A stretch of 64,000 nucleotides of DNA from Macrostomum lignano (GCA_002269645.1 NIVC01000247.1:372001-436000), one strand, 5' to 3'; counted from the stretch's first letter, positions 565 through 51,837 are shown. A program made the numbers and translations. Notes: a model not told the origin generated them from the sequence alone.

Positions 565-1079
565 CTGCAATGGAGAAAAATAAACGAGACTTCAGACACT
601 TTCAATTGGATCTTCAGCAACTTGCTGAAACAAGGTAAAAAGCAGAAAAATTTCAAAGCAGAAACGCTATTTTGAATTTCCAGAGTCCCCCCGCACCGAT
701 CAATTGTTTTGCTTTTCCGAGACGTTTTTTTTCCTGAGACTGCAGCTGCATTGTTGCGCTACGGGCCTGGCTTGAAAGCGAAGTAGTTTTTTCATAGAAA
801 AATACCCGATCCGCTGGGGACTGCAGAGAGGATACACAAAGGGCCAAGGGAAATCGAAGAACAGCCTCTGAGGCTGACAAAGCAAATGAGAGAGGCAAAT
901 GCTTCGCTTTCATTATTTCTACTAATAGAAACCAATTGAAGCGTTGAAGCTCTAAATGGTGGGAGTGGGGCGAAATTCTGCTACTGACTGCACTGCCGCT
1001 TGCTGCCTCTGCTCCTGGAACAGACGATTTAACAACCGTAATGCAACTCTTGTTTGAACTGCTCACTCTAAATCTCTGT

Positions 1080-4000
1080 GCCACTCTCTCCCTTATCTCT
1101 TCACTCTCTCCATCTCACCCATCCATCTCACTCTCCCTCTCACTCAATCTCACTCTCCCTCTCACTCCATCTCACTCTCTCTCTCACTCTATCTCATTCT
1201 CCCTCTCACTCCATCTCACTCTCCCTCTCACTCCCTCTCACTCTCCGTCTCGCTCCATCTCACTCTCCCTCTCGCTCCATCTCACTCTCCCTCTCACTCC
1301 CTCTCACTCTTCCTCTCGCTCCATCTCACTCTCCCTCTCGCTCCATCTCAGTCTCCCTCTCACTCTATCTCATTCTCCCTCTCATTCCATCTCACTCTCC
1401 CTCTCACTCCCTCTCACTCTTCCTCTCACTCCATCTCACTCTCCCTCTCACTCCATCTCACTCTTCCTCTCACTCCCTCTCACTCTCCCTCTCGCTCCAT
1501 CTCACTCTCCCTCTCACTCCATCTCACTCTCCCTCTCACTCCATCTCACTCTCTCTCTCACTCTATCTCATTCTCCCTCTCACTCCATCTCACTCTCCCT
1601 CTCACTCCCTCTCACTCTTCCTCTCGCTCCATCTCACTCTCCCTCTCGCTCCATCTCAGTCTCCCTCTCACTCTATCTCATTCTCCCTCTTACTCCATCT
1701 CACTCTCTCTCTCACTCTATCTCATTCTCCCTCTCACTCCATCTCACTCTCCCTCTCACTCCCTCTCACTCTCCCTCTCGCTCCATCTCACTCTCCCTCT
1801 CGCTCCATCTCACTCTCCCTCTCGCTCCATCTCACTCTCCCTCTCACTCCATCTCACTCTCCCTCTCACTCCATCTCACTCTCCATCTCACCCATCCATC
1901 TCACTCTCCCTCTCACTCAATCTCACGCTCCTTCTCGCTCCATCTCACTCTCCCTCTCGCTCCCTCTCATTCTCCCTCTCACTCCATCTCACTCTCCCTC
2001 TCACTCCATCTCACTCTCCCTCTCACTCCCTCTCACTCTCGCTCTCGCTCCATCTCACTCTCCCTCTCGCTCCATCTCACTCTCCCTCTCACTCCCTCTC
2101 ACTCTTCCTCTCGCTCCATCTCATTCTCCCTCTCACTCCATCTCACTCTCCCTCTCACTCCCTCTCACTCTTCCTCTCGCTCCATCTCACTCTCCCTCTC
2201 GCTCCATCTCAGTCTCCCTCTCACTCTATCTCATTCTCCCTCTCATTCCATCTCACTCTCCCTCTCACTCCCTCTCACTCTTCCTCTCACTCCATCTCAC
2301 TCTCTCTCTCACTCTATCTCATTCTCCCTCTCACTCCATCTCACTCTCCCTCTCGCTCCATCTCAGTCTCCCTCTCACTCTATCTCATTCTCCCTCTCAT
2401 TCCATCTCACTCTCCCTCTCACTCCCTCTCACTCTTCCTCTCGCTCCATCTCACTCTCCCTCTCGCTCCATCTCACTCTCCCTCTCACTCCATCTCACTC
2501 TCCCTCTCACTCAATCTCACGCTCCTTCTCGCTCCATCTCACTCTCCCTCTCATTCCATCTCACTCTCCCTCTTGCTCCATCTCACTCTCCATCTCACTC
2601 CATCTCTCTCTCCCTCTCACTCAATCTCACTCTCCCTCTCGCTCCATCTCACTCTCCCTCCAACTCCATCTCACTCTCCCTCTCGCTCCATCTCACTCTC
2701 CCTCTCGCTCCATCTCACTCTCCATCTCACCCATCCATCTCACTCTCCCTCTCACTCAATCTCACGCTCCTTCTCGCTCCATCTCACTCTCCCTCTCACT
2801 CCATCTCACTCTCCCTCTCACTCAATCTCACGCTCCTTCTCGCTCCATCTCACTCTCCCTCTCATTCCATCTCACTCTTCCTCTCGCTCCATCTCACTCT
2901 CCCTCTCGCTCCATCTCTCTCTCCCTCTCACTCAATCTCACTCTCCCTCTCGCTCCATCTCACTCTCCCTCCAACTCCATCTCACTCTCCCTCTCGCTCC
3001 ATCTCACTCTCCCTCTCGCTCCATCTCACTCTCCATCTCACCCATCCATCTCACTCTCCCTCTCACTCAATCTCACGCTCCTTCTCGCTCCATCTCACTC
3101 TCCCTCTCGCTCCATCTCACTCTCCCTCTCACTCCATCTCACTCTCCCTCTCACTCCATCTCACTCTCCCTCTCACTCCCTCTCACTCTCCCTCTCGCTC
3201 CATCTCACTCTCCCTCTCGCTCCATCTCACTCTCCCTCTCACTCCATCTCACTCTCTCTCTCACTCTATCTCATTCTCCCTCTCACTCCATCTCACTCTC
3301 CCTCTCACTCCCTCTCACTCTTCCTCTCGCTCCATCTCACTCTCCCTCTCGCTCCATCTCAGTCTCCCTCTCACTCTATCTCATTCTCCCTCCCATTCCA
3401 TCTCACTCTCCCTCTCACTCCCTCTCACTCTTCCTCTCACTCCATCTCACTCTCCCTCTCACTCCCTCTCACTCTCCCTTTCGCTCCATCTCACTCTCCC
3501 TCTCACTCCATCTCACTCTCCCTCTCACTCCATCTCACTCTCCCTCTCACTCTATCTCATTCTCCCTCTCACTCCATCTCACTCTCCCTCTCACTCCCTC
3601 TCACTCTTCCTCTCGCTCCATCTCACTCTCCCTCTCGCTCCATCTCAGTCTCCCTCTCACTCTATCTCATTCTCCCTCTCATTCCATCTCACTCTCCCTC
3701 TCACTCCCTCTCACTCTTCCTCCCACTCCATCTCACTCTCTCTCTCACTCTATCTCATTCTCCCTCTCACTCAATCTCACTCTCCCTCTCGCTCCATCTC
3801 ACTCTCCCTCCAACTCCATTTCACTCTCCCTCTCGCTCCATCTCACTCTCCCTCTCGCTCCATCTCACTCTCCATCTCACCCATCCATCTCACTCTCCCT
3901 CTCACTCAATCTCACGCTCCTTCTCGCTCCATCTCACTCTCCCTCTCGCTCCATCTCACTCTCCCTCTCGCTCCATCTCACTCTCCCTCTCGCTCCATCT

Positions 4001-4242
4001 CACTCTCCCTCTCACTCTATCTCATTCTCCCTCTCACTCCATCTCACTCTCCCTCTCACTCCCTCTCACTCTTTCTCTCACTCCATCTCATTCTCTCTCT
4101 CTCACTCTATCTCATTCTCCCTCTCACTCCATCTCACTCTCCCTCTCACTCCCTCTCACTCTTCCTCTCACTCCATCTCACTCTCCCTCTCACTCCATCT
4201 CACTCTCCCTCTCACTCCATCTCACTCTCCCTCTCACTCCAT
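1080..4242. repeat. About 3.2-kb pyrimidine-rich 22-bp satellite (CTCCATCTCACTCTCCCTCTCA)
   Basis: Almost all C/T/A on the plus strand. It explains the artefactual Ser/Leu/His ORFs. Confidence 0.95.
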
Positions 4243-4548
4243 CACTCAGATGAAATGGCGCCGCACTCAGATGAAATGGCGCCGCACTCAGATGAAATGG
4301 CGCCCCACTCAAATGAAATGGCGCCCCACTCAAATGAAATGGCGCCCCACTCAAATGAAATGGCGCCCCACTCAAATGAAATGGCGCCCCAGTCAAATGA
4401 AATGGCGCCCCACTCAAATGAAATGGCGCCCCACTCAAATGAAATGGCGCCCCACTCAAATGAAATGGCGCTCCACTCAAATGAAAGGCGCCCCACTCAA
4501 ATGAAATGGTGCTCCACTCAAATGAAATGGCGCCCCACTCAGATGAAA
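4243..4548. repeat. 21-bp minisatellite CACTCAAATGAAATGGCGCCC, about 14 copies
   Basis: Directly visible. Confidence 0.95.
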
Positions 4549-5144
4549 GACCCTGGCTTCGCTCGGATATTTTGCCCCTTAATCTCCATGTTTTCATTGT
4601 CTGTGGACTTATTTTGCAGCTTTAAACCCAGCTTTATTGGGCAATTCCCCATCTCCCTCTCCTACTTCTCTACTCAGGGGAGGCAGCTGCAGAGCGGCAG
4701 TCCGCTACACCTCCTTCGCTGCTCCCGAACAAAAATCTATTTTTCAGCGCCAGATTTTTTTCAAAAGTGGAAATTTCATTTCCTGAACCGCTGGGAGAAG
4801 GCTCGACTCGACCTTCGAGGCCTCGAGATCCCAGCGGCACGAAATGGGACGAGGAGACAGATGAAGCAGATTAAGACTGATGAAGCTGCTAGCGGCGGCA
4901 GGATTCTGGGCCCGATGCCAGCTCTCTTCATCCTTTACTCTTCCTTCCCGTATTTTCCCAATTTTCCCCAGTGCCTCCCCTGTCGGGAGCGGGGTATACA
5001 TTTTAATTAATATTCAATTGGCGCTCAGCCCCAGTGTGATCAGGGTTTTCATCAAGCCTGGGAGAGACGCTAGGATGCAGCCTTCCTTTTTTGGTTATTT
5101 TAGTTGGCTTGCAGATTTTCTCCTATCTGATTTGAGCACTCGCT

Positions 5145-9592: not shown

Positions 9593-10665
9593 CCGGTTTG
9601 AAAGGCAGATTAAATCTGCGACGTTATGACAGGTTGTTAAAAAAGAATTCGTGGCTAGAGAGATTGCCAAACAGAGCTTAATAAACAAGATGGCAGATTT
9701 AATCAATAATTTTCAGACACGTCTCAACAAACCAGAGCCGGGGCAGTCGCAGGAATGCTAATGAAGCACCTGTTGCCGCTTGCTGTGAGGATTTGCGACT
9801 GCTAACAATCACAAGCAGGCTTTAATCCCATCTCACCCGCTGACAGCCCAGCCATCTGTGCTGGGAATTGCAAACGAGTTCATTTATTCTCTGCCATAAA
9901 TATATTTAAGTCACGGATAATATTCGGCATGACTCGATGAGCCTCTTGTTTAGGGATTTCTCCCTTATTTCCAGGTGATAAAAGACGCACGAGAGACAGG
10001 GGGGACGCAGTTCGTGTCCCGGATTGAATTTGGCCACTTGCTCTCTGTCTCCATCCTGCCGAGTAGGAAACGTGTGAAATACTCACTGTCAGCCCTGAGA
10101 AATAAAAAAGTTTTTAAGCTACGATTTTCCAGCCTCAGCAATATCTCCCTGGGCTAGCTGCTCCGCTCAGTCTGAGCTGTCCTCAGCAGCTCCCAGTCAG
10201 AAGATGCATTAGGGACCCCCCTGTGACCCCCATTGGCAAATATTTGCCCTGCCCCATCTTCCACTTTAGTCTGGGAAAAAGAAAAACTCCTCTGACTTCG
10301 TTTTGGCTGCTGGTGAAACTGCGGAAGGCTCTCAGTCATATTCTGTCCGCCCCATCAGTGCTGCTCAGAGCTTCTGCGGCTTCAGGGGCCGTCTGCCGGC
10401 TAGTTCTCACAGCTGCCTCTGCAAGATTATCTGGCAAATCAACCTTTAGTTGAAAGCGATAAGAAATCCGCCAGGATGCCAGGTGAATTTCGACAGCTGC
10501 TGAAATTTAGCACTGCACAGCTCTGAGGCAGCTGGGGCTTCCGGCATCTCAACAGCTGCGGAGTCCGGGGATGCTCTTGAACTCGGATTTATAGCCCTCT
10601 GGTCTGCTCAAAACACCTGCTAGTGATAACTTGTACCTTAGCACCATTGTCGCGGTTCCTATCCG

Positions 10666-11150
10666 TCCCCTCTCTCCCCTCTCCCCTCTCCCCTCTCGCC
10701 TCTTACCTTTCCCCTCTCCCCTCTCGCCTTTTACCTTTCCCCTCTCCCCTCTCCCCTCTTACCTTTCCCCTCTCCACTCTCCCCTCTCCACTCTCCCCTC
10801 TCCCCTCTTACCTTTCCCCTCTCCCCTCTCCCCTCTCCCCTCTCCCCTCTTTCCTTTCCCCTCTCCCCTCTCCCCTCTTACCTTTCCCCTCTCCCCTCTC
10901 CCCTCTCCCCTCTTACCTTTCCCCTCTCCCCTCTCCCCTCTTACCTTTCCCCTCTCCCCTCTCCCCTCTTACCTTTCCCCTCTCCCCTCTCCCCTCTCCC
11001 CTCTTACCTTTCCCCTCTCCCCTCTCGCCTCTTACCTTTCCCCTCTCTCCTCTCCCCTCTCCCCTCTTACCTTTCCCCTCTCCCCTCTCCCCTCTTACCT
11101 TTCCCCTTTCATCTCTCCCCTCACCCCTCTCCCCTCTCCCCCTATCTCTC
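10666..11150. repeat. CCCCTCT / CCCCTCTTACCTTT pyrimidine repeat
   Basis: Directly visible. Confidence 0.9.
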
Positions 11151-11679
11151 CTTTCTCTCGCCTCGCTCCAACTCTTCCTCTCTACTCACTCGCAGCCTCT
11201 TTTTTACCTCTTCTTCAACTCTAGTAATATCGACCATGTCCTCATCGCATTCACCAATATTTTGCCAATTCACTAAATTAATTTCATAAGAAAAAAGCAT
11301 CTTTGACATTCTAAGAAAACCCCAGCTAATTATTTTAATTAACAAATTTTCTCTAATCACGCTAAAACGCGCAGCAATCATTCTTACATTGTCAGATGCT
11401 TACATTGTCAGATGGAACAAAAAATTTATTACTCAAGATTGAATTGCGAGAATTCTAGCTGGGAGCCCTGTTTCAGTATCTGTGATGGTAGATTAAATTG
11501 ATTTTTTTCACTTTTCTCGATTAGGAAAACTGCCACGCCCAGAGCAGGGAATTTGATGAAAGCCTAAATTAATGAATTGTAACTGCATGTCATGACCACG
11601 ATACAAGACATTGCAGCTCAAGCATAACGGCCTTGTTCCATTTAATTTTTTGCTTGCAGCGACAAAGCAATTACGTGAA

Positions 11680-15224: not shown

Positions 15225-15417
15225 GGGCCGTATGCAGAAAGCTCTGTCTAGGGTAGTCCGGTCTTGAAAAGCTAGTCTAGACTTGGATTTGGTATGCAGA
15301 AACACAGAGTTAGACCAGTCTACTATAGCACAACTAGGCTAGCTAGACCATAGACTATAGACTGAACTACCCAAGTCCGGACTAGCTAATCTGGACTAAG
15401 CTTTCTGCATACGGCCC
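15225..15417. mobile_element. 193-bp MITE, PIF/Harbinger-like
   Basis: Perfect 19-bp TIR GGGCCGTATGCAGAAAGCT / AGCTTTCTGCATACGGCCC flanked by a 3-bp direct repeat TAT. The superfamily is inferred from the GGGCC terminus and 3-bp TSD. Confidence 0.75.
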
Positions 15418-15509
15418 TATGTCTAGCATGCATTCATGAGAACACTGATACAGAGAAACAAAAATAGATACTGGTTTACGATTTCGAATTAAGAACTTCG
15501 ACAACTCAC

Positions 15510-15720
15510 CTTTGTGAACGCCAGTGAACTTGTCCTTGAGCACGGTCAGCTCCAGGATCGCGCCGAACTCCTCAAACAGCGGTCGCAGATCGTCCTCCTC
15601 CATGGACCGGGGGATCTGGCCGACGAACAGCTTGATGCGTTCCCCCGACTTGCCGCCTCCCGTGGCGGCGGAGGCCACCGCGAGTTCCTGTCCGTTCGAT
15701 GTGCTCACCCCGCTTACCAT
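15510..15720 (-). CDS. CELF: CELF3-6 (Bruno-like/UNC-75-type) RNA-binding protein, coding exon 1 (N-terminal half of RRM1)
   Basis: Translates [10 protein letters not shown]...[42 protein letters not shown](G), which carries RNP2 and matches the CELF3-6 subfamily rather than CELF1/2. It ends at donor AAAG|GTGAGT in phase 1. An upstream in-frame extension is possible. Confidence 0.92.
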
Positions 15721-17678
15721 GGCTGGATGTCGTGAGTCAGTCGGAATCCGGGTGCGATATCGGCAGGTGCAACGAGGTACTGCTGCTGCTGGTGCAGTGC
15801 TGAATAAGCTTCCACTTGTGCCGGCCAACTGAATTGCGACCAACCCGACAGAGCAATGACTGCTGATTGGCGATGGAGCTGAATTTTCGAAAGGATTTTA
15901 TTAAACCGGTTTGCTAAGCGAGTACTTGACCGACCAGCTGGTTGTAGCGAGGCTTAGCTTGGAGCGATAGGCTTAAGGCCGCCTTGAAACAACAGTTTAT
16001 TGTCGTCTGAGACGCCACCGGGTGAGCTCTCAGAATTGATCTGTCCTGATTGGATGCTGAGGTTCTCGGCAAGCGAATGGAAAGGATGAGGAGCTGAGGA
16101 GAGGCCTCTGATTATGATCATCCCACTCCATGCCCACAGCCTCACCGCCCCATCAGCAGCAGGTTTTTCTCCGATTTGCGTGTCAGTCCCTCACATCGAC
16201 TGCGATAGTCAGTCGTTAGTCAATACAAACCAATCTGACAGTGTTTCAATGTTAAATTAATTTGCTAATCTGAACCTTGGATGGCCGTCACCACGAAGGT
16301 CTCTCGTATCTTTTTTGCCATTCTTTTATCCAAAAAGACGTCTTATCAAATCTTTAATATCTCAAAAATCTTTCATAGTATCTCTGACAGTTTGTCACTA
16401 TTCAGGTTGACGAGAAAAGGAAACGGATATGTTAATTCAGATGGAAAAAAGCAAAAACTGCAGTTTATTTTGTGAAAATAATTATTAACAATAATTTGCC
16501 TGCTTATAGCGCTTGTCTGTGCACATGTTTCATAGAAGTATTTTTTTGTTTGAAAATTAAAAAAGCAAATCCTAATTAAGGCAAACAAACGATATGGGAA
16601 AATCAGCCTGTTTGGAACTCGTAAAACTCTCATGCAAAAAACCTCTGAAAAAGGGATATGAAATAGTAGAAACGTTCATCTATTACAAAAAGGGCCGAGT
16701 CAGAACTATCAGAAAAAAATCAATCGTGTCTTGATAATTCGAGTCTTTTAGTAAGAGTTTCATTGATCATGTCCTGCCTTGATTAGCTACCAACAGGAAA
16801 ATCTAGGAGTAGGGAACACACAGAAGTTTCACTCTCGCAGTTAAAAATCCTCTCTATATCTTGGTCACTACGAAAAACTGACTTTTGAAAAGCAAACAAC
16901 ATGGCTTGAAATCGTATAGAACGGAGCACAGGCTTTCTAAAAGACGTATTTTCAACATAGAGAGAAAAATAGATTTTGTTTTGTTTTAATTTCTGTCTGA
17001 TTATAAATTTGTTCCGCTTGAACGCGTCTGCAGGCGCTGGGGGGCATCAGGCGGCGTACGAGTCCTGAGGCCGCCAGACCTCCTTTGACTTGCCACCCGG
17101 TTTGGCCAGAGCCGGCTCGCGCTTTGAGTACCTGAAATTTTGGGCAGCTGCTCGTTACGGATTTCTGTTATCTGCTCAAAAAGCGCCGCGGTTAATTGGG
17201 GAAGATTCTTTTTGATCCAGACAGAGCCTTGGGTGCAGAATGTTGCTACGGAGCAACCTATGCAATATTTCAAGATTAGTAATCACTTGCCACACCTACG
17301 AAGATTTTGTATAATTATAGTTGATAAGGTCCAATTGGGGACAAATTTATTCTTGCAGCTTTTTTGCCTGTTTGATCTGCAGGCCGATGTCGCCAGGTGC
17401 CGGCAGCTCAGACGTTGGTCTGATTGTTCTAATTAGCCACGTGGGCTGGAAGATTTTCGGCTGCAGAGGAAAAGACACCCGCTTCAATTTTTTTGCTTCG
17501 ATGCGAAAATTGCTATCAAAATTGCTCCGACGATTTTTTGGGAGCATCCCTTGATTCAAAAACGTATATGCCACTTGGAAAGCTTACCATATGCTTTTTT
17601 AGCTATCGAAAATTGCGTTTGCCATGCAAAGGTGGAAAACGGAGATTTAAACTTGCAATTTATAGACTTTACACTCAT

Positions 17679-18904: not shown

Positions 18905-19279
18905 TTACTTCAATTTAGCTCCAGTTTTCGCCTTCTTGTCCGAATTCTTGCCGCCTTTGGCTCCGGCAGCCGCCTTTGCTGGCTTCTGTTGTTGCTGCTG
19001 TTGCTCCTTCTGCTTCGGCTCCTTCTCTTGCCGGGACGTCTTGGCTCCTGCCACGGGTTTCGCCTCAAGCTTCTTCTCAGCCAGGGCCTGCGGCTGCTCC
19101 TCAGGCTGACACTGGGCTTGCTCATGATGGTGACCGTGCAGGTGAGACTCCGATGACTCGGCGTCCTCAATCACGAGGCGGTCGACCCGTTTCGGTCGGT
19201 CGGGATCCTCCGCAATTGGTGGCAGGTGCAAATCCTCGCGAATGTTGGTGGGCTGGAAGACCTCGCCAGTGGGGTCCGC
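18905..19279 (-). CDS. TBATA: TBATA/SPATIAL-like protein, terminal exon 4 (low-complexity Q/K/A tail)
   Basis: Phase-0 acceptor CCCCTCCACTCAG|GCG at 19279; a weaker in-frame alternative lies at 19321. The frame is open to TAA at 18905-18907. Confidence 0.65.
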   Translation of the reverse strand, partial: ADPTGEVFQPTNIREDLHLPPIAEDPDRPKRVDRLVIEDAESSESHLHGHHHEQAQCQPEEQPQALAEKKLEAKPVAGAKTSRQEKEPKQKEQQQQQQKPAKAAAGAKGGKNSDKKAKTGAKLK

Positions 19280-19792
19280 CTGAGTGGAGGGGCCGACAGG
19301 TTTGGTGGGTCTTGAGACGTGCTCAGATAAATTAGTACAGAGAAGCAGGTTGCATATAGGACACAAATGTAGCTCAGTCAACAGTAGCTCTTGAGCGATG
19401 CATCACGTGACAGAATCGAGGCCATAGATTGGTTGAGCTACTGATAACTGCTAGCTGCTAAGCTTCGTGAAATCGGCCCCTGGCGGGTCATAGCAGACAT
19501 ATCAGTTGGTAGAGTTTAGGCAGCATAAACAGACACGTGAATTCTACTAGTTGTTGAGTGGCATCACACTTAGAGAGCCCCAAAAACTCATAAACAAAGC
19601 TACATGCAAAATACAGTTTACTAGAATCGTGTGATCACAAAACTTTTCGTCTCGTTTCCCTAGTAGCTTCGCGAGTCCAAGATTGCTCAAATCAATTTAG
19701 CTCGTACAGATGGTTCAGACCCATTATAAAATTGATTTGAGCAATCTTTGAACTACAGAGCTACTGGTGGTAACATAGCAGCCGGTCCTCAC

Positions 19793-20145
19793 CTCGTAGT
19801 ACGCAGCTTTGTTAGCCACAGCAGATCGGATAACGTCCATGACGAGCGCCTTCTCTCGATCGGAGGCGCTCACCAGCCAAGCCTGGACGGCGTTGAAATC
19901 CTCGGTCTGTAGAATCTGGCAGAGCATGCTGAACACCGCGGACTCGAGGTCCGGTGCGGCGCTGATGTGCTCGTAGTTGGACAGCACGTGGGCCGGCGTG
20001 GAACGACGGGATGAGCGCAGCGGACGACGCGACATTGCGCGTGACGGTGGCGGAATCAGCCGCCCGGTCTGTCGACTGTACATCGGCCTGGCCGTCTGTG
20101 ATTGCTCCGGCTGCTGCTGGCGGGCTGGGTCAGGATAGGTGGCCT
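19793..20145 (-). CDS. TBATA: TBATA/SPATIAL-like protein, exon 3
   Basis: Acceptor CCCGCAG|AG (phase 1) and donor GAG|GTGAGG (phase 0). It encodes YSRQTGRLIPPPSRA and MLCQILQTEDFNAVQAWLVSASDREKALV, matching TBATA blocks (YSxxTGRLIP; LCQILQTDSxxAIQxWL). Confidence 0.82.
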
Positions 20146-20339
20146 CTGCGGGTTGGTGAAGTTGTTGGGTGCACGAATGAAGGTTTAGTGAGTTTTTAGC
20201 CCTGGCGAAATGAGTAGATAGGCAAAGTTGACCGATAACATTAATGTAGATGGTTAAACTAATATTTACACATTGGTTGGATCCGCATTGTCGATGCTGT
20301 TAAGAGTTTTATTGGTGGAGTCCCATTGGTAGATATTGG

Positions 20340-20520
20340 TAGATTTACTTTGTTAGAGTTCTATTGGTAGAGTTCTATTGGTAGGGAATGGTAGAGTTCT
20401 ATTGGTAGAGAATGGTAAAGTCCCGTTGGTAGAGTTCTATTGGTAGAGAATGGTAAATTCCCGTTGGTAGAGTTCTATTGGTAGAGAATGGTAGACTCCG
20501 GTTGGTAGAATTCTATTGTT
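20340..20520. repeat. Degenerate GGTAGAGTTCTATT-containing tandem repeat in TBATA intron 2
   Basis: Directly visible; several imperfect copies. Confidence 0.7.
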
Positions 20521-21041
20521 AAAGTCCTAGAGCCCGTTCTATAAAGCCATCGTAAGATAAGATCGTTCTTAGCTCCCATCTCCGCAGTGTAAAAGTTCTG
20601 GCGTACGATCCAACTTACGCTACGACAGCTTTATAGTACGACCCGCTAGTTACTTCATTTGAGAGACTTCTATTGGTAGAGTTTCATTGGCAGAACTCCA
20701 TTGACAGAACTGGCCAAACTGTTGGAAGATCTATCGACTACATCTTAAGAATTTTACATTTATATCAACATCATACGAAGTAACACGCGTTTGAAATTAA
20801 ATGATGCTTAAAGTTACTGCTCTCCTTCCAATGATGCTACTTTAGTAGTGTTTAGAAATTTTTCGTCTAAATTCTAAATCGACTACCAACTGCAAAGCTG
20901 GCTTAGAAGCCAGTAAAAAGTCAGACAGCGCACGTTTTAGTAATTGAACAAAATATATTTAGACGATAACAAACAAAGCATACAAATATATTGTAAACGA
21001 TTGTGATAATTTTGAAAACAATATTTCTCTGCAGTCACTCC

Positions 21042-22067
21042 TCAATAGCGCTTCTTCCGACTGCCGTAGCCGTTGTCGCTGTACTTATAGTTGCCATACT
21101 TGTCCTTAGGCGCCTTGTACAACAGCTTGCGCTTGCCGCCCTTCGGGCTCTCCAGGTAGTGACTAACCACGCGAGGCTTGCCGTACTTGTCGAGCTCTTC
21201 TTCGATCACCTCGTCGTAGTCGTAGTCGCCGCCATAGAAACTGTCGTAGTAGTCGTCGAATCCGTAGTCGTCGAAAAGATCGAGCAGGTCCAGATAATCT
21301 TCGCCGCTGTAGTCGTCAGCGTAGTCGTCGTCATAATAATTTAACTTATCGTAGCCCTTGGCGTAGCTGGGTTCATAGCCCTTGCCATAGCCATCGTCCT
21401 TGCCGTAGCCCTTGCCATAGCCATCGTCCTTGCCGTAGCTCTTGCCGTAGCTCTCGCGGTAGCTCTCGCGGTAGCCCTTGTCGTAGTCATCGTCCTTGCC
21501 GTAGCGCTTGCCGTAGCCCTTGTCGTAGTCATCGTCCTTGCTGTAACGCTTTCCGTAGCCCTTGTCATAGTCATCGTCCTTGCCGTAGCTCTTGCCGTAG
21601 CTCTCGCGGTAGCTCTTGCCGTAGCCCTTGTCGTAGTCATCGTCCTTGCCGTAGCGCTTGCCGTAGCCCTTGTCGTAGTCATCGTCCTTGCTGTAACGCT
21701 TGCCGTAGCCCTTGTCATAGACATCGTTCTTGCCGTAGCTCTTGCCGTAGCCCTTGTAGTCATCGTCCTTGCTGTAACGCTTGCCGTAGCCCTTGTCATA
21801 GCCATCGTCCTTGCCGTAGCTCTTGCCATACCCATCGTTCCTGTCGTAGCTCCGATCATAGGCCTTTTCATAGCCGTCGTCCTTGTCGTAGCCCTTGGCA
21901 TAGCGATCATCCTTGCCCTTACCGTAGCTCACACCCGAGCTGTAAGGTTGCTGATATCCATCGTAGGTGTTGGTGCCTCTGGCAATGCCATGATCTCCGT
22001 GCGACTCAACCAGGCCTAGCCCGCAAGCAAAGGCTAGCAGAGCCAGCCAATTTAAGCTAGTTCTCAT
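21042..22067 (-). CDS. Secreted Tyr/Gly/Asp/Lys-rich repeat protein (341 aa), eggshell/DOPA structural-protein-like; intronless and nested in TBATA intron 2
   Basis: Signal-peptide-like N-terminus MRTSLNWLALLAFACGLGLVES, then tandem YGKDDDYDKG/YGKRYSK repeats, an acidic Tyr/Asp segment and a basic C-terminus. Codon usage is coding-like (C/G third positions) and a TATA box lies upstream. Confidence 0.85.
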   Translation of the reverse strand: MRTSLNWLALLAFACGLGLVESHGDHGIARGTNTYDGYQQPYSSGVSYGKGKDDRYAKGYDKDDGYEKAYDRSYDRNDGYGKSYGKDDGYDKGYGKRYSKDDDYKGYGKSYGKNDVYDKGYGKRYSKDDDYDKGYGKRYGKDDDYDKGYGKSYRESYGKSYGKDDDYDKGYGKRYSKDDDYDKGYGKRYGKDDDYDKGYRESYRESYGKSYGKDDGYGKGYGKDDGYGKGYEPSYAKGYDKLNYYDDDYADDYSGEDYLDLLDLFDDYGFDDYYDSFYGGDYDYDEVIEEELDKYGKPRVVSHYLESPKGGKRKLLYKAPKDKYGNYKYSDNGYGSRKKRY

Positions 22068-22145
22068 ATTGTTCCAAGTGCTGCTCAAAATGATCAAAAT
22101 GGTAGACGTGAGCAACAGTCCCGAAAACCATTAGACTTCAGACCA

Positions 22146-22152
22146 TTTTATA
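22146..22152 (-). promoter_or_regulatory. TATA box (TATAAAA) of the nested Tyr-rich gene
   Basis: TATAAAA on the minus strand about 80 nt upstream of the ATG at 22067; a CCAAT motif lies near 22383. Confidence 0.5.
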
Positions 22153-23163
22153 GGATCAGAGTTAGGCTTTATAAATTATACTAGCTAAAGATTACGTTTC
22201 ACACACTGTGCTACGCTTAGGGGTTGGGGGTCACGCCAGTGGCTGCAATTGGCTGACTGAGCAGTCCGACCACCCCCCTCACTGCAGCCCCGTTCCCTTC
22301 CCGCGTTCAAAGTCAACCCATCGCACCACCCTTGGCTGGGGGGGGGGTAGAAAAAACTGTCAGGCAGCGTATCGGCTCTCAGCCAATCAGATCGCGCCAC
22401 TTAACCACAGACGCTGATTTTAGATGACTCACAGCGTACGCACTCTATTGGATATGTTAGTAAAAATATTTGGAAGGTTAGAAATACGCTTTTTGTTGAT
22501 AAGCTAAAACAAACATATTTGGTTAAAATGCATTTTGACACTTAAGAGCAAACTTCTACAAAAAAAGAAAAAAATAAACGCTTATTCTACTCTCTGATTC
22601 TGATTTCTCCAATTGGTGTTCATTAAATATGCTGGCGTGTGTCCAAAAAAGAAATTGATATTAATAGCTCATAATTCTCCTATATACTCAGCAACATTGA
22701 AAAGTCGCCACTCTATGCGCCCAGTGAGCAATTTCTCTGGGACTATTCTGAAATTTAAAAGACACGAGAAAATAGATCGGAGTAGCTTTAATCCCTCCAA
22801 CCCTCGCACACCGCTCCCCCAGTTCATTCCTCAACTCAAGGCTGCCGCGGCGGAGCTGAGTTGCGTCACTGGCAAAAATTGAGATGAGACTTTACCTGCG
22901 CTCTCAAAAGTGGCGACCACAGACGGAATCTTCTGTGATGGCGAATTTACAATGTTGCTAAGTACATATATTTTTGTATCGACAATGAACTGCCGGTGCG
23001 TCATGAACTATATAAAGTCGTACTTTTGTGCAAGCTAAAAAAGTAGCGCCACAGACATCAAAGTAGCGCCTCAGACATCAAAAAAGCGCCACAGACATCA
23101 AAGTACATGGTAGCGCAAGAGACATCAAAGTAGGCCACCTACTAACTGTTTGCAGTTACTCAC

Positions 23164-23483
23164 CACGCCGCAGGTTCATGTCGCCGCGTCCGTCTGCAGC
23201 CGGAGCCGGAGCCACTGGCTGCTCAGGATGGAATGTCTGGTCAGTGAGGCTTCTCAGCTGCTCTCTCCAGCTCTCCGTTACCGGAACTAGACCGAGTCTT
23301 GGTACGGCCTTCTCCTTGAATGAATAGTTTCTCAAGTTGGTGAAATACTGCAGTCCATTCACCGTGTCCAGCGGGTGCTTGTGCGAGTTGAGATGGATGG
23401 CGTTGACCGGCAGCAGGAGCCTCTGGCTGGCCAGCTTCTCGTCGTTGTGCCCGTTCGGAGGGAAGCACAGGTGCGTTTCGTAG
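23164..23483 (-). CDS. TBATA: TBATA/SPATIAL-like protein, exon 2
   Basis: Acceptor ACGCAG|C (phase 2) and donor CGTG|GTGAGT (phase 1), 320 nt. It contains GLVPVTESWREQLRSL, similar to the TBATA WREEL block. Confidence 0.78.
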
Positions 23484-23554
23484 CTGCGTTGTTTTTTATT
23501 GCGGGGTTTAGTGCTTGAGGGGCATTGTTGCAGTGTCCTCATTTGTGGCGCCAA

Positions 23555-24536
23555 ACGGGAGTGGGTTATAGATGTGGCGCCAAAAGGGTGTAGGTCCTAG
23601 ATGTGGCGCCAAAAGGGTGTGGATTATAGATGTGGTACTAAAGGGTGTGTGTTCTAGATGTGGTACTAAAGGGTGTGGGTTCTAGATGTGGTACTAAAGG
23701 GTGTGGGTTCTAGATGTGGTACTAAAGGATGTGGGTTTCAGATGTGGTACTAAAGGGTGTGGGTTCTAGATGTGGTACTAAAGGGTGTGGGTTCTAGATG
23801 TGGTACTAAAGGGTGTGGGTTCTAGATGTGGTACTAAAGGGTGTGGGTTCTAGATGTGGTACTAAAGGGTGTGGGTTCTAGATGTGGCGCCAAAAGGGAA
23901 GGGTGTGGGTTCTATATGTGGCGCCAAAAGGGCGTGGATTATAGATGTGGTGCCAAAAAGCTGTGGGTTCTAGATGTGGTACTAAAGGGTGTGGGTCCTA
24001 GATGTGGCGCCAAAAGGGTGTGGATTCTAGATGTGGCGTCAAAAAGCTGTGGGTTCTAGATGTGGTACTAAAGGGTGTGGTTTCTAGATGTGGCGCCAAA
24101 AGGGTGTGGGTTCTAGATGTGGCATCAAAAAGCTGTGGGTTCTAGATGTGGTACTAAAGGGTGTGGGTTCTAGATGTGGCGCCAAAAGGGAAGGGTGTGG
24201 GTTCTATATGTGGCGCCAAAAGGGCGTGGATTATAGATGTGGTGCCAAAAAGCTGTGGGTTCTAGATGTGGTACTAAAGGGTGTGGGTCCTAGATGTGGC
24301 GCCAAAAGGGTGTGGATTCTAGATGTGGCGTCAAAAAGCTGTGGGTTCTAGATGTGGTACTAAAGGGTGTGGTTTCTAGATGTGGCGCCAAAAGGGTGTG
24401 GGTTCTAGATGTGGCATCAAAAAGCTGTGGGTTCTAGATGTGGTACTAAAGGGTGTGGTTTCTAGATGTGGCGCCAAAAAGCTGTGGGTTCTAGATGTGG
24501 CGCCAAAAAGCTGTGGTTTCTAGATGTGGCGCCAAA
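23555..24536. repeat. 28-29-bp minisatellite TCTAGATGTGG(TACT/CGCC)AAAGGGTGTGGGT filling TBATA intron 1
   Basis: About 34 units, including a duplicated block of about 290 bp (identical ORFs at 23841 and within 24088-24351). Confidence 0.95.
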
Positions 24537-24679
24537 GGTAAAGGGGCTATTTAAGACTTCACAGAGGACTCCAAGTTTTTCTGTGTGGGTGTAGTCTAAA
24601 TGAACCTCTCGAAGCCACATTAAGAAAGTAACATCAAAGGTTGCTCTAAAAATGGTTTACAAATCAATCTGACCCTCAC

Positions 24680-24891
24680 CTGCTATCATCGCAGTCATCG
24701 ACCACCACGGGAATGGGCAGGCCCAGCAGTCCTTTGATGTGAACGCACCTGTGAGGGTGCGGGTTATGCCTGGCAAAGAAGGAACTCTTGGACAGCTGGC
24801 CGAACCTGTAGCCTGACTGCGTCGATGGCCGGCTTGGAGTCGAGTTGGACGGCTCGGGCTTCTTCACCGGCTGAAGTTCCACGGTGGCCAT
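24680..24891 (-). CDS. TBATA: TBATA/SPATIAL-like protein, exon 1
   Basis: The ATG is preceded by an in-frame TAA. It encodes RFGQLSKSSFFARHNPHPHRCVHIKGLLGLPIPVVVD, matching the TBATA N-terminal block (RFGxLSxxSFFxRHxPHPxxVxHI). Donor AG|GTGAGG is phase 2. Confidence 0.8.
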
Positions 24892-29831: not shown

Positions 29832-31745
29832 ATGACGCAGGAACAATTCGGCTCGAGTCTGGCCGAATCGCAACGAGCTGCGTCTCTGTTCAGCCTCCTG
29901 GACACTGACGGATCCGGCTTCATCACCGAGTCGGACCTCGCTCGCTGCTGCGACGGTGATCTTAGGCCAGATGAGGTCCGACAGATCTTCGCCCAGTTGG
30001 ACGAAGACGGCGACGGCCGGGTTGACGCGGCCGACTTTCAGGCCGGTTTCAGGGCCATCGGCCTGTCCTTGGCCTCCCGCGAGTTGCACAACCAGCATCA
30101 GCATCATCACCAGCAGTTGGCAGCTGGCCAGGCTGGCAGCTCTCTGAGCATGAAGGCCTTCTCCCAGGAGCGGCTACTAGACGTTGACGAGCCCCAAGAG
30201 CTGCGACAGCCGCCGCAGCAGCGTAGCGGTGCCAGCGGAGCAGACCTCGAACACCAGCTGACAGAGGGACTTCAGCAGCTCAGCTGTCAAGAGAAAGTCT
30301 GCGAGCTGCACTGCCTGTTGCAGCGCCAATACCCCCAGCTTGTAGACAGCTTCGAGTCCATTATTGTCAGTGCAGCCAAGGAGGTCGGAGCTCAACGTCG
30401 CGAACGTCAACGACTCGAGGAGGCCTTTGCCAGAGCCAAGGCGGCCAACGAGAGCCACGTGCGCCAACTGGAGGAGGAGATGGAGATCCAGATGACCAAG
30501 TTGGAGCAGCGAGCGAGAGCGCAGGAAAGACGCCGGCTGGCCGAGCAATACCAGGACCTGCTGGACAGAAAGCAGGCCGAAATCGACGAGCTGCAGACGA
30601 TGATCGACGAACTGCAGCGTCGACGAAGCCGACAGGATGCCGCGGATGCCACTTCAGAGGTCGGGTTACGACGCAGCGTCGAAGAAACCAGGGAGCGAAA
30701 CCAGAGTCTCTTAGCGGACATGCAGAGGCTGGAGACGGCGCTAGCGGTAAGCCGCAGCGAGCTCGCTCGAATGCGCCAGGACCAGGAAGGCCGGACCCGG
30801 GAGCTGCTGGTCGAGAGAAGAAATCTTCAGACCTACCAGCGCGATCAGGAGCAGCTGGCACTACAGCTGCGGCTGCTACAGCAGGCCAACCGGAGTCTAA
30901 GCGACACCAACGACAGTCTGCGCTGCGCTCTTGAGCGCCAATACAGCGGCGTCAGCAGCGGTGGTGGCGGAGGTGGCGCTGTCACGCCGTCGTCCGGGCG
31001 AGGCAGCTTCTGTCGCCCCGTGAGCAGCGTTGGCACCGCCGCGGCCGCGGAGGAATTTTGCGAAGACGGGGTGGAGAGAAGAGTGGGTCTGAGCACCGAG
31101 CTAGATGAGGATGACGAGGAGGTTGACAGCGGAATGTCGACCTGTCGCGACGATCAGCGACAGTCCATGGCTTCTGCCGCCGACTTCCCGGATCACTTTG
31201 TAATCCCTTTTGGCGGCGGCGGCGGCGGCGGCAAAGGCTTTGGGTACGATTTTACCGACGAAGAAGTAGAAGAGGATGAAGAAGGTCTTCACTCCACCCG
31301 AGAGACTCTGGTCGATTGTGGAGCTCGGGAGCGGAGCTCGGCGACCGCTCAACAGCTGGACGATTGCTATATGTACTCCGAAGCGCAGGAGGACGGAGAA
31401 GTCATCCGTCGTCGCCAGCCGTTGCGCAGCAGTCGAAGGCATCGGCAGCTCCGTCGGTGTCCTCAGCCTCATCAGATGGGATATCCGGAGGAAGAGGAGG
31501 AGGGCACTGAAGTGGATCAGGCAGAGTCAATTGCTGAGTCGGTTGCCATGTCGCCACCCGAGCGCATGTTCAAGGTGGTGTTGGCAGGCGACGCGGCAGT
31601 GGGCAAGAGCAGCTTCATTGGACGATTTTGCGATGGTCGATTCTCTGCCAACACGACGGCCACGCTGGGCGTAGACTTCAAGACTCGGACGCTGGTAGTG
31701 GACGGTCGAGTTGTGGCCGTACAGCTTTGGGACACGGCCGGCCAG
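29832..31745 (+). CDS. RASEF: RASEF/Rab45 (EF-hand + coiled coil + Rab GTPase), exon 1
   Basis: Two EF-hands (DTDGSGFITESDL; DEDGDGRVDAADF), a long coiled coil, then Rab G1 GDAAVGKS, switch I TLGVDF and G3 WDTAGQ. Donor CAG|GTTAGA is phase 0. Confidence 0.92.
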
Positions 31746-31830
31746 GTTAGAAAAAACTTCCCTAACTAATTGTCCGCATATTTTCTGTCGAACGGCCTTT
31801 GCATTCTCCAGTTTCTTGTAGCCATTGTCA

Positions 31831-32840
31831 AACTCAAAAGTCACTCTCCAGTCTTAACTCGAGAGTCACTCTCCAGTACCAACTCTAGAGTCACTCTCCA
31901 GTCCCAACTCGAGAGTCACTCTCCAGTCCCAACTCGAGAGTCACTCTCCAGTACCAACTCTAGAGTCACTCTCCAGTCTTAACTCGAGAGTCACTCTCCA
32001 GTCCCAACTCGAGAGTCACTTTCCAGTACCAACTCTAGAGTCACTCTCCAGTCCCAACTCGAGAGTCACTCTCCAGTACCAACTCTAGAGTCACTCTCCA
32101 GTCCCAACTCGAGAGTCACTCTCCAGTACCAACTCTAGAGTCACTCTCCAGTCCCAACTCTAGAGTCACTCTCCAGTACCAACTCTAGAGTCACTCTCCA
32201 GTACCAACTCGAGAGTCACTCTCCAGTCCCAACTCGAGAGTCACTTTCCAGTCCCAACTCGAGAGTCACTCTCCAGTCTTAACTCGAGAGTCACTCTCCA
32301 GTACCAACTCGAGAGTCACTCTCCAGTCCCAACTCTAGAGTCACTCTCCAGTCCCAACTCGAGAGTCACTCTCCAGTCTTAACTCGAGAGTCACTCTCCA
32401 GTCCCAACTCGAGAGTCACTTTCCAGTACCAACTCTAGAGTCACTCTCCAGTCCCAACTCGAGAGTCACTCTCCAGTACCAACTCTAGAGTCACTCTCCA
32501 GTCCCAACTCGAGAGTCACTCTCCAGTACCAACTCTAGAGTCACTCTCCAGTCCCAACTCCAGAGTCACTCTCCAGTCCCAACTCTAGAGTCACTCTCCA
32601 GTCCCAACTCGAGAGTCACTCTCCAGTACCAACTCGAGAGTCACTCTCCAGTCCCAACTCGAGAGTCACTCTCCAGTCCCAATTCGAGAGTAACTCTCCA
32701 GTCCCAATTCGAGAGTCACTCTCCAGTCCCAATTCGAGAGTCACTCTCCAGTCTCAACCCGAGAGTCACTCTCCAATCTTAACTGGAGAGTAACTCTCCA
32801 GTCTCAAACCTAGAGTCACTCCACAGTCTCAACTCTAGAG
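31831..32840. repeat. 25-bp minisatellite CTCGAGAGTCACTCTCCAGTCCCAA, about 40 copies, in the RASEF intron
   Basis: Directly visible; begins about 85 nt after the donor. Confidence 0.95.
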
Positions 32841-33649
32841 CTAATCTCGTTATCCTTATTTAACTCAACTCGCAATTAAACTCGCACAGCTCAAAATAAA
32901 GTTGAGATCACGCTAATTCTCAGATCACGCTAATTTTTAACAATAGACAGTAAACAATTACTTAAGACAGACTATATATTATGGAAATTAAATATGAGCA
33001 GACAGTTTGACTCAAAAACAAAGTCATAAATCAAGCGTACTGACGGCATAAAATACAAGTCTACATATCGTCACCGCGTGAGTCAGTGAATGTCCAAATA
33101 TGGAAACTACACCCGCGGGGCTATGGAACTGTCTACGTCAAACAATTTTCAGTACCTCAATTGAAAACCCGTATAATTTTGAGCACTTCAACTCCTTACT
33201 CTTTGTATTGTACTACCCTCAATCGCGCTACTCAAAGTCTAACATACTAGCCCCGCCTGAAGCCAAGTCAGTCACAGTCCGCTAGCTTTGTGGAAATACG
33301 ATATTTGGCAATTAATTTTGCTCAACTCCAACAGTCGCTGAAGTCGATTGGGAAAGAGAGAGGGGAGGAGAGAGGGCGAGAGTCTAGCAGAAAAGTTCAG
33401 GTCACGATCAGAGTCCAGTAAAAAAACTACCAGTGAAGCTCTTACACTTGGCAATAGATAGAGGGCAGAGCTCTAAGAATGCTAAGAAAGCATTCGAGGC
33501 GTCGCGAAAACTATAAATTTTATTTTAAGACAGCTAGACTGACGATTTCCTCTCAATGTCATCTGATATATACTGAATTTGACGAGAAATCTTGCAGAAG
33601 TCACATAATAATCTTTCGTTGAGTATTGTCTAAATCCTACCGAAAAAAT

Positions 33650-34410
33650 CTTCCACCTGAATCTAACTTGAATCTCCCTCTGAATCTGTTATGAATCTCA
33701 CAATATCTTATAATTCTCACCTGAATCTCACCTGAACCTCATCAAATTTCACAGGAATTTCATGCAATCTCATCTGAATCTCACCGGAATCTCACCTGAA
33801 TATCATCAAATCTCACCTGAATCCCACTTGAACCTCATCCAATCTCACCTGAACCTCATTCAAGCCCACATGAACCCCATCTAATCTCATATGAACTCCA
33901 TCCAATCTCACCGGATATCTTCCAATCTCACCTGAATCTCACCTGAATCTCATCCAATCTCATTTAAATCTCACCAAAATATCTTCTCATCTCACCTAAA
34001 TCTCATCTGAACCTTATCCAATCTCACCTGAACGTCATCTAATCTCACCTGAATCTTACCTGAATCTCACCTGAATATCATCAAATCTCACCTGAATCCC
34101 ACTTGAACCTCATCCAATCTCACCTGAACCTCATTCAAGCCCACATGAACCCCATCTAATCTCACATGAACTCCATCCAATCTCACCGGATATCTTCCAA
34201 TCTCACCTGAATCTCACCTGAATCTCATCCAATCTCATTTTAATCTCACCAAAATATCTTCTCATCTCACCTAAATCTCATCTAAACCTTATCCAATCTC
34301 ACCTGAACGTCATCTAATCTCACCTGAATCTTACCTGAATCTCACCCAATCTCACCTAAATCTCACCGAAAAATCGTCTATTCCATCTACTAAAAATTCT
34401 CACCTGAATC
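33650..34410. repeat. Degenerate 11-bp repeat AATCTCACCTG with an internal duplication of about 275 bp, in the RASEF intron
   Basis: Directly visible; the marker CCCACTTG occurs at 33823 and 34098. The array runs up to the exon 2 acceptor. Confidence 0.9.
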
Positions 34411-34425
34411 TCGAACCATCGCCAG

Positions 34426-34851
34426 GAGCGCTTCCGCAGCATTGCCAAGTCCTACTTCCGTCGCGCAGACGGCGTGATCCTCATGTACGACTGCACCCAC
34501 GAACGTTCGTTCCTGAGCGCTCGCGACTGGATGGAGTCGATCCGGGATTGCGCCGAGCCCGGCATCCCCGTTGTGCTGGCCGGCAACAAGGCCGACCTTC
34601 GCGGTGGAGGCGGCACCGGGCGAGGCGTCGACGCATCGGAAGGCGCCCGCCTTGCCGAGTCGCTGGAGGCGGCGATGTTTGTGGAGACGAGCGCCGCGTC
34701 GGGCCTGGCCGTCAGCTCGACGGTGGAGCAGCTCTGCCGGTTGCTATGGGAACGAGAGGACGCAGAGTTGATGCGAGGCGGCGGTGGCGACAGCTCCGGC
34801 AGTGTTCAGCTGAAAGATGGCGCAGGAAAGAAACTGGGCTCCTGTTGCTGA
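34426..34851 (+). CDS. RASEF: RASEF/Rab45, exon 2 (rest of Rab domain, CC prenylation end)
   Basis: Acceptor GCCAG|GAG gives ERFRSIAKSYFRRADGVILMYD...GNKADL...ETSA...GSCC*. The total protein is about 779 aa. Confidence 0.92.
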   Translation, partial: ERFRSIAKSYFRRADGVILMYDCTHERSFLSARDWMESIRDCAEPGIPVVLAGNKADLRGGGGTGRGVDASEGARLAESLEAAMFVETSAASGLAVSSTVEQLCRLLWEREDAELMRGGGGDSSGSVQLKDGAGKKLGSCC

Positions 34852-40029: not shown

Positions 40030-40500
40030 CCAAAATATTCCAGCTAGGGTGGTCCGTAGGGTGGTCCGTAGACACAGCGGGGAGGGAGGCCAGGGTTGCC
40101 CATTCCGCTAGCCCCTGAAAGCCCGCAGACAGGCAGATGCGGGGGGCGGTCAGGGTGGTCCGCCGGTCCATCCCTTAGCGTGATCTTCCATAGGGAAGAA
40201 AGTGGCTCGTCTTGTCGCCCGGAGGAACTGGATGAGCCGTGGGGATGCTGTCGGACTTGCAGACCTCGTAAATAGACGGGTTTGGCCCGAGGTAGCGTAG
40301 CCGGTCTCTGCAGTAAAGAAAGGGCAGTGACAAACAAAATGCTGAGCATCTTCATTGTAATACTCGCATAAAGGGCAAAGTTCACTCTCGAGGTCGCCTC
40401 GAATGAAGTAGTGTCTGGCGAGGTAGCCATGGCCTGTAACCTCATGACACGGGCTCGAATATCCTTCCGATTTCGGTTCAGGACCTTCAAATTGTCTACC
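40030..40500 (-). mobile_element. 3' end of a LINE (RNase H-clade-type C-terminal CCHC zinc finger), frameshifted
   Basis: Across frames it reads LNRNRKDIR...TGHGYLARHYFIRGDLESELCPLCEYYNEDAQHFVCHCPFF...RLIQFLRATRR, the typical TGH-CxxC-ExxxH-xxxC LINE terminus. Confidence 0.75.
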
Positions 40501-40566
40501 AAATTTTCTTGTCACACTTTTACCTTTGTCTACCAAATTTCTACCGATTTGCACCCCACTCAGCAG

Positions 40567-51792: not shown

Positions 51793-51837
51793 AATAGTGA
51801 ACCCATCAACAAAGGCAACCCATGCACGGCGCCGCAG

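Follow-up and report, generated by a model that had tools for sequence, protein, structure and literature searches.

An intronless gene for a predicted Tyr-rich repeat protein lies in sense within intron 2 of a TBATA/SPATIAL gene of the flatworm Macrostomum lignano

Introduction

Is a repeat-rich reading frame that lies inside an intron of another gene, on the same strand, a gene in its own right, and if so, does its position tie it to its host? This question is raised by a 64,000-nt stretch of the Macrostomum lignano genome (GCA_002269645.1, NIVC01000247.1:372001-436000), hereafter the window, in which an intronless open reading frame (ORF) for a Tyr-rich repeat protein of 341 residues lies within intron 2 of a gene of the TBATA/SPATIAL family. 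An earlier note on this DNA had proposed that the inner gene encodes an eggshell-like, female-function protein, that the host has a male function, and that the promoter and poly(A) site of the inner gene could make the expression of the two mutually exclusive. M. lignano has been described as a free-living flatworm, a simultaneous hermaphrodite and a hidden polyploid; the hermaphroditism that this proposal presupposes is thus given.

Adding 372000 to a window coordinate gives the coordinate on NIVC01000247.1. The window copy of the locus (L002, window 19832-44851 at 100 %) was compared with two homeologous copies, L003 on NIVC01000085.1 and L001 on NIVC01003317.1; the latter ends at the proximal TATA box of the nested gene and could be compared in the upstream region only.

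Results

The host is a four-exon TBATA/SPATIAL gene

The host gene was rebuilt on the minus strand from four exons. Exon 1 (24680-24891) carries the SFFARHNPHPHR motif, and its ATG at 24891 is the GenBank coding sequence (CDS) start in the paralogue; it is followed by exon 2 (23164-23483), by exon 3 (19793-20145), which encodes the C-terminal half of the SPATIAL domain as matched by Pfam, and by exon 4 with the stop (18905-19279), whose acceptor was picked for its phase, its pyrimidine tract and its spacing in comparison with a homologue. The model translates into 419 residues. Its product matched the Pfam SPATIAL/TBATA profile (PF15256) from position 1 to 201 of 201 in a single stretch (expectation value, E, 9.4e-39; 134.3 bits with a gathering cut-off of 27), and exon 3 on its own matched the same profile with 84.8 bits (E = 1.4e-23). 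Because the SPATIAL match runs unbroken across all three splice junctions, the host model is right and the intron that contains the nested gene is intron 2. This intron (20146-23163, minus strand; 3,018 nt, GTGAGT...CAG, phase 1) has its donor G/GTGAGT with the first base at 23163 and its acceptor CCCGCAG/ with the last base at 20146, and the flanking exons join in frame. The interval singled out by the earlier note is thus exactly one GT..AG intron, and it is the TBATA intron that had been named.

A Tyr-rich repeat gene lies in sense within intron 2

On the minus strand, a 341-codon frame ran unbroken from an ATG at 22067 to a stop at 21042-21044 (CDS 21042-22067). The CDS is intronless and lies as a whole within the single host intron 23163-20146 in the orientation of the host, and the same layout was found on NIVC01000085.1. 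The previous description of a YGKDDDYDKG-type repeat gene on the strand of the host, wholly inside intron 2, was therefore accurate.

The first 23 residues (MRTSLNWLALLAFACGLGLVESH, 21999-22067) resemble a signal peptide. Read by eye, MRTSLNWLALLAFACGLGLVES/HG at the N-terminus combines a single basic residue with a hydrophobic core ~16 residues long, and positions -3 and -1 are occupied by small residues; this pattern suggests a cleavable signal peptide, in which the sole Cys of the protein sits. Residues 48-228 (21384-21926) form a repeat zone of (X-Tyr-Gly/Asp-Lys) units, variants of YGK(R/S)Y(S/G)KDDDYDKG, which is charge-balanced with an isoelectric point (pI) of 7.7. The zone is followed by an acidic Tyr-rich block (residues 229-288, 21204-21383), with 20 Asp or Glu, 14 Tyr and a pI of 4.05, and by a basic C-terminal tail (residues 289-341, 21045-21203) with a pI of 9.8. 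The whole protein is net acidic (pI 5.1) and contains 18.8 % Tyr, 18.2 % Asp, 16.1 % Gly and 14.1 % Lys; Tyr is followed by Gly in 25 of 64 cases. A multi-copy neuropeptide precursor was considered for such a repeat and rejected, as Gly-Lys is followed by R, S, D, G or N at equivalent repeat positions and dibasic sites are not conserved.

The base repeat unit found by Tandem Repeats Finder is 12 nt (AGC TAC GGC AAG, Ser-Tyr-Gly-Lys); units of higher order measure 42, 78 and 150 nt. All eight periods reported by that program within the nested CDS (12, 18, 30, 42, 54, 78, 81 and 150) are multiples of 3; outside the CDS, in the 15-30 kb stretch, 3 of 13 period rows are divisible by 3. The ORF also runs for ~160 non-repeat codons without a stop, on both sides of the repeats, for which the chance is roughly 3e-4. 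Its codon use is biased (AAG 48/48, GGC 47/55, GC content at third positions 0.78), which would be compatible with high expression. A second frame of the repeat is open as well, over 189 residues. The higher-order repeat copies differ by four non-synonymous changes and one synonymous change, five changes being too few for an informative ratio of non-synonymous to synonymous rates (dN/dS).

The AlphaFold2 model of the full-length protein had a mean predicted local distance difference test score (pLDDT) of 45, with 279 of 341 residues below 50, and the product is predicted to be an intrinsically disordered polyampholyte. Three beta strands were hinted at near the C-terminus of this model, with pLDDT of 74-85 at about residues 281-330 (the strand region is also given as 285-321; window ~21078-21227), and this beta structure was absent from the model of an isolated 92-residue C-terminal fragment. 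Residues 281-330 may form a small folded or oligomerising module.

The nested gene is conserved and annotated at a homeologous locus

The GenBank annotation of L003 contains two genes on the same strand, SPATIAL with 441 residues and a separate gene with 393 residues, and their CDS starts coincide with the ATG of host exon 1 and with the nested ATG, respectively. The 393 residues equal 341 plus 52, and these 52 residues are an in-frame repeat expansion in L003. Within the locus compared, the nested ORF of L003 was open over 328 codons and 79 % identical to the window protein, with the 52 extra repeat residues as the main difference. The repeat periods of the paralogue (12, 42, 66, 108 and 138) are again all multiples of 3. 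That a separate same-strand CDS of 393 residues is annotated at the homeologous locus shows that the nested ORF is a real gene and that its nested position is older than the duplication; same-strand nesting is kept in all three copies as far as they are readable.

In the alignable part of the nested CDS, the window and L003 differed by 6 synonymous and 8 non-synonymous changes, with a ratio of non-synonymous to synonymous differences per site (pN/pS) of ~0.32; under neutrality, the probability of at least 6 synonymous changes among 14 was 0.037. Host exons 1 and 2 differed by 3 synonymous and 0 non-synonymous changes between the same copies. Taken together, the sequence evidence indicates that the nested gene is a genuine and probably independent protein-coding gene.

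Both genes (SPATIAL and the nested gene; window 18905-24891, L003 1-5184) were uncalled in the fetched parts of NIVC01000247.1 and NIVC01003317.1 and called on NIVC01000085.1. Elsewhere in the window, large tandem arrays, C/T-rich or of other kinds (1041-5010, 10623-11276, 46259-47812 and 53590-54783), gave spurious ORFs of up to 1,310 residues with several frames open, and these array ORFs are a useful negative control for the nested gene.

The nested protein had no match in Pfam, among PDB sequences or by Foldseek. Of two HMMER searches, covering 5.8 and 1.84 billion proteins, a word-indexed one returned 0 matches and an exhaustive phmmer one returned 9, all of them unrelated periodic repeats such as DYDTSFGRVQVKFT units. 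As the annotated paralogue was missed too, this lack of matches is no evidence that the gene is an orphan. Exact-sequence look-ups of the window protein, of a guessed 393-residue paralogue and of the 419-residue host model were without match. A HMMER search with host exon 3 missed the M. lignano SPATIAL protein, and negatives for low-complexity or exon-sized queries are not the same as absence.

Promoter-like elements, a putative 3' end and a cryptic acceptor

Two TATA motifs precede the nested ATG on the minus strand. The proximal TATA box, TATAAAA at 22146-22152, is 79-85 nt from the ATG and is the same in the two paralogous copies; the other motif, TATAAA, is at 22168-22173. The TATA box that had been reported earlier was thus present and accompanied by another. 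Both motifs lie 79-106 nt 5' of the ATG, and ~0.04 would be expected in 110 nt (window background 0.36 TATAAA per kb per strand). Two CCAAT boxes were also found, TCAGCCAAT at 22248-22252 on the minus strand, conserved in L001 and L003, and TCAGCCAATCAG in the opposite orientation at 22383-22387 (plus strand). In L003, the TATA boxes, the CCAAT boxes, the ATG with A at -3 and the acceptor described below are all intact; in L001, the TATA and CCAAT boxes are. We considered promoter conservation as a sign of function and rejected it: the upstream 500 nt are 99.8 % identical to L001 but ~97 % identical to L003, which is within background. The individual promoter elements are intact, with no extra conservation beyond background.

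Neither AATAAA nor ATTAAA occurred within 640 nt 3' of the nested stop. The only motifs resembling a poly(A) signal soon after the stop were two AATATA hexamers (20987-20992 and 20954-20959, minus strand). The missing AATAAA had been taken as the mark of a weak site that the host can read through. The absence was confirmed; the interpretation was not, as, of the three further putative gene ends of the window, two also lack AATAAA, those of the host last exon and of an 825-residue gene (within 500 nt), so that the missing signal cannot be read as a deliberately weak site. We infer that transcription would most likely start ~30 nt downstream of TATAAAA, near 22120, and would most likely end shortly after the AATATA hexamers, near 20935-20970. 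A retroposition origin of the gene was rejected, as no poly(A) tract follows it.

A candidate 3' splice or spliced-leader (SL) trans-splice acceptor, ccattttgatcattttgagcag/, was found at 22080-22103 (minus strand). Its first exon base is 22080, 13 nt 5' of the ATG; it is conserved in L003, and its pyrimidine richness is about equal to that of the true host acceptor. Host exon 2 spliced to 22080 would read ...RR-ALGTI-stop and drop the conserved C-terminal half of the SPATIAL domain. In this splice the host TGA overlaps the nested ATG (ATGA; 22065-22080, minus strand), probably by coincidence. Splicing of the ORF into TBATA mRNA had been named earlier as one of the outcomes that would overturn the note's reading. 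As an in-frame exon this was not found: for every AG acceptor from 22200 to the ATG, the host frame meets a stop in 7 codons or fewer, which rules out the nested ORF as a coding cassette exon of TBATA.

Tandem repeats in the host introns and neighbouring genes

A 20/27-nt minisatellite (AAAGTAGCGCCACAGACATC) starts ~30 nt inside host intron 2, beside the donor (window 23040-23130). It has ~3 copies in the window, ~35 in L003 (1961-2767) and ~93, or 2.3 kb, in L001 (1048-3359), so that the intron bearing the nested gene varies by >2 kb between homeologues. Downstream of the nested gene, a 38-nt tandem repeat with a 14-nt sub-unit occupies 20298-20518 and 20640-20720; its units read ACCAATAGAACTCT on the gene strand and yield a run of CCAAT motifs. 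The repeat is interrupted by a segment at 20535-20640 that has 37-nt imperfect inverted arms and may be a small inserted element. Host intron 1 is largely made up of a 29-nt tandem array, with 34 copies in the window (23552-24538), 56 in L003 (3221-4829) and 43 in L001 (3844-5065).

A Rasef-like gene (29832-34851, plus strand; 779 residues, BOX15_Mlig002364g1), which encodes EF-hands, a coiled coil and a Rab domain, is 99 % identical to an M. lignano protein and is arranged head to head with TBATA, ~4.9 kb separating the two; one of its introns (~31831-32840) holds a tandem array with a 25-nt period. The 825-residue gene (40411-42888, plus strand), with MRIGSENWHEKQ and KAEVKAEEK repeats, has no Pfam match and is annotated in all three homeologous loci. 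Weak Pfam matches were obtained for exons at 61000-61512 (plus strand; deoxynucleoside-kinase fold, NDUFA10-like by eye), 51770-52516 (plus strand; Exo_endo_phos) and 15382-15843 (minus strand; RRM_1). Rfam and tRNA scans of the 64-kb window were empty.

Discussion

A candidate precursor of cross-linked extracellular material

We favour, with moderate confidence, the reading that this is an independent intronless gene, in sense within TBATA intron 2, for a precursor of Tyr-cross-linked extracellular material, with eggshell or cement as leading candidates. Among the readings weighed here, a Tyr-cross-linked extracellular precursor appears best supported, and composition and context point to eggshell or cement as its destination. 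We infer that the product would enter the secretory pathway and that its Tyr would be oxidised and then coupled to the abundant Lys, giving a quinone-tanned or di-tyrosine material; the destinations in view would be eggshell granules made by the oocyte, or the secretion of shell or cement glands that lie around the female antrum. The protein itself would have grown by in-frame expansion of the 12-nt X-Tyr-Gly/Asp-Lys unit, followed by the acidic Tyr block and the basic tail.

In trematode eggshell precursors, Tyr is often followed by Gly, and DOPA-quinone (DOPA, 3,4-dihydroxyphenylalanine) made by tyrosinase forms cross-links to Lys (PMC2758302). The nested protein has the composition that marks such precursors, being high in Tyr and Gly, with Tyr-Gly frequent and Lys present. 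Furthermore, Macrostomum oocytes deposit eggshell granules, and shell and cement glands ring the antrum (PMC4490696). The eggshell likeness claimed for the gene thus stood for composition (Y/G/K, Tyr-Gly), which resembles that of trematode precursors, and did not extend to a role beyond composition.

Several points weigh against this reading. The feature that suggests an eggshell role is composition, and the composition is not uniformly favourable: 18 % Asp and a net negative charge (pI 5.1) would be atypical for Tyr-rich cross-linking proteins, and an acidic, Asp-rich composition would suit a Tyr-sulphated or cation-binding secreted protein too. Constraint on the nested gene is moderate, as the first 47 codons contain 5 differences, of which 4 are non-synonymous, and as the repeat copies show the 4 to 1 excess of non-synonymous change given above. 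The gene is unannotated on the window's own contig, NIVC01000247.1. No eggshell protein was among the matches of either kind of HMMER search, a weak point since the 79 %-identical paralogue was missed too. Finally, RNA815_13, the sole shell- or cement-gland transcript with a published sequence, is an unrelated 16-kb transcript from a different gene.

A possible but rather unlikely alternative keeps the gene and the type of protein and assigns it to another gland secretion, such as prostate seminal fluid, rhabdites or mucus, pharyngeal glands or adhesive accessory secretion; the product would then be acidic and possibly Tyr-sulphated. Nothing in the sequence specifies a tissue. The DDDY and DDY motifs are a classical acidic setting for tyrosine sulphation, and the acidic net charge differs from that of the basic DOPA adhesives. 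In addition, two studies report many lineage-restricted secreted reproductive proteins in M. lignano (PMC5977470, PMC7336406). However, six strings from the nested gene had no match in the seminal-fluid supplements of PMC5977470, files whose content of transcript sequence is unconfirmed. An adhesive role is further disfavoured because no DOPA was found in flatworm adhesive footprints and the macrostomid temporary adhesive consists of two giant proteins (PMC9229212). The Y/G/K composition and the Tyr-Gly flanking also suit a cross-linking precursor.

Does the nesting couple the two genes?

In the favoured reading, the arrangement is old and probably a passive result of where the gene arose, a regulatory role being less likely. 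Three forms of coupling were weighed in addition.

In the first, the nested mRNA would be excised from the host pre-mRNA by SL trans-splicing and intronic polyadenylation, with a shared promoter and competition for each transcript. This route was overlooked in the earlier note. It fits the species, in which trans-splicing affects 38.8 % of genes and polycistronic precursors make up ~7 % of transcriptional units; in the published annotation pipeline, units on the same strand are divided at peaks of trans-splicing and polyadenylation (PMC5730564). It also fits the good pyrimidine tract and CAG acceptor at 22080 (22080/22083), which is conserved in L003. We nevertheless consider it improbable, as two conserved TATA boxes and two CCAAT boxes lie at promoter-like distances from the nested start, and a secreted structural protein and cytoplasmic TBATA are unlikely to be needed in the same cells. 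Furthermore, the M. lignano spliced leader ends in AUG, and this AUG would be out of frame at either acceptor, opening a short upstream ORF that overlaps the real start.

In the second, which is the earlier proposal, expression of host and nested gene would be mutually exclusive, enforced by promoter occlusion, premature polyadenylation or forced exonisation. The same-strand nesting kept in the three copies, as far as readable, speaks for it, as does the cryptic acceptor 13 nt 5' of the nested ATG, whose use would truncate TBATA after exon 2. In human cells, moreover, nested genes are known to bring about exonisation of the host, to make it retain introns and to cause its polyadenylation at cryptic sites (Kaer et al. 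2011, PMC3192792). However, for human nested pairs, studies have come to conflicting conclusions about anticorrelated expression (PMC3192792), and whole-genome duplication by itself would lead one to expect conservation between homeologues. In this window a lack of AATAAA is nothing special, and a sex-specific role of TBATA in a flatworm is an extrapolation from mouse. Such interference seems quite improbable here.

In the third, a female-function gene in sense within a sperm-associated host would form a cis-coupled, hard-wired male/female switch kept through genome duplication; each primary transcript or each cell would yield one mRNA, through promoter occlusion, the 22080 acceptor or intronic polyadenylation. 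The male function of TBATA claimed for this purpose holds for mouse, where TBATA/Spatial partners KIF17b in the spermatid manchette and the sperm tail (PMC12123824). For the flatworm it is extrapolated, and mammalian TBATA also acts in the thymus (thymic stromal Nedd8 pathway) and the brain (PMC2964569). Our literature search found no paper joining TBATA with flatworms, and the supplements of PMC5816591 had no TBATA/SPATIAL entry. A female gene inside a male gene would thus be two stacked extrapolations of low probability, and we regard the switch as very unlikely.

The weakest alternative, that the ORF is a non-functional transcribed minisatellite whose repeat unit is stop-free by chance in a genome full of spurious-ORF arrays, draws on window arrays with ORFs of >1,000 residues open in three frames, on the second open frame of 189 residues in the nested repeat and on the lack of synonymous excess among repeat copies, and is extremely unlikely. 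The ORF continues for ~160 codons outside the repeats, in both directions, and its first ATG is exactly where a signal-peptide-like sequence starts; its periods are all multiples of 3 where those of neighbouring arrays differ; a diverged copy that has another repeat number and an annotated CDS retains both the start and the frame; and the ORF has a pN/pS of ~0.3 and strong codon bias.

Significance

Sense-strand intronic nesting is an ordinary genome arrangement; the annotation presented here is sound and its novelty modest. A lineage-restricted Tyr-rich secreted repeat protein and a sense intronic nested gene are both of known kinds, and the pair is partly in public annotation already. The functional and regulatory account is a plausible conjecture. 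If the gene does encode an eggshell or cement precursor, it would be the first molecular entry point to the question of how an archoophoran flatworm, whose oocyte makes the shell granules itself, forms its shell, and a comparison would become possible with the shells that vitellocytes make in parasitic flatworms. Because transgenesis and RNA interference work in M. lignano, the nested pair is also a practical test case for whether same-strand nesting, cryptic acceptors and trans-splicing put a host and its guest in competition.

Annotation can take two lessons from the locus. The window's contig lacks calls for both genes, which are called at the homeologous locus, and composition-filtered profile searches missed even a 79 %-identical low-complexity paralogue.

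Comparison with known systems

The host shares the SFFARHNPHPHR and LCQILQT..VQAWL motifs with vertebrate TBATA, and roles known from mammals may not transfer to the flatworm gene. As for the arrangement, most nested genes had been said to be antisense to their hosts. This was overstated: among human nested genes, ~63 % are antisense and about a third are on the same strand, and 41 % are single-exon (PMC3192792). Like other intronic nested genes of animals, the gene described here has a single-exon CDS and promoter-like elements inside one host intron. As in the interference described by Kaer et al., use of the upstream cryptic acceptor could force exonisation in the host and lead to its premature polyadenylation. 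Compared with human nested genes, M. lignano adds SL trans-splicing and polycistronic units, a second route by which an inner mRNA could arise.

As for the protein, the DOPA proteins of mussel feet and tubeworm cement are, like the nested protein, disordered, secreted repeats rich in Tyr, Lys and Gly; they are tyrosinase substrates and have no homology with it. The mussel and tubeworm proteins are strongly basic, or acidic via phosphoserine. The closer likeness in composition is to trematode eggshell precursors (Schistosoma p14, p19 and p48 and the Fasciola vitelline proteins), which are repetitive, rich in Tyr, Gly and Lys, and secreted, as is predicted for the nested protein. With 18.8 % Tyr and 16.1 % Gly it comes close to Schistosoma p48, with 26 % Tyr and 15 % Gly (PMC3499410). 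It would differ from the trematode precursors in its 18 % Asp, in being net acidic, and in having a separate acidic block and basic tail. The setting differs too: Macrostomum is without vitellaria, and its shell material comes from the oocyte or from shell glands.

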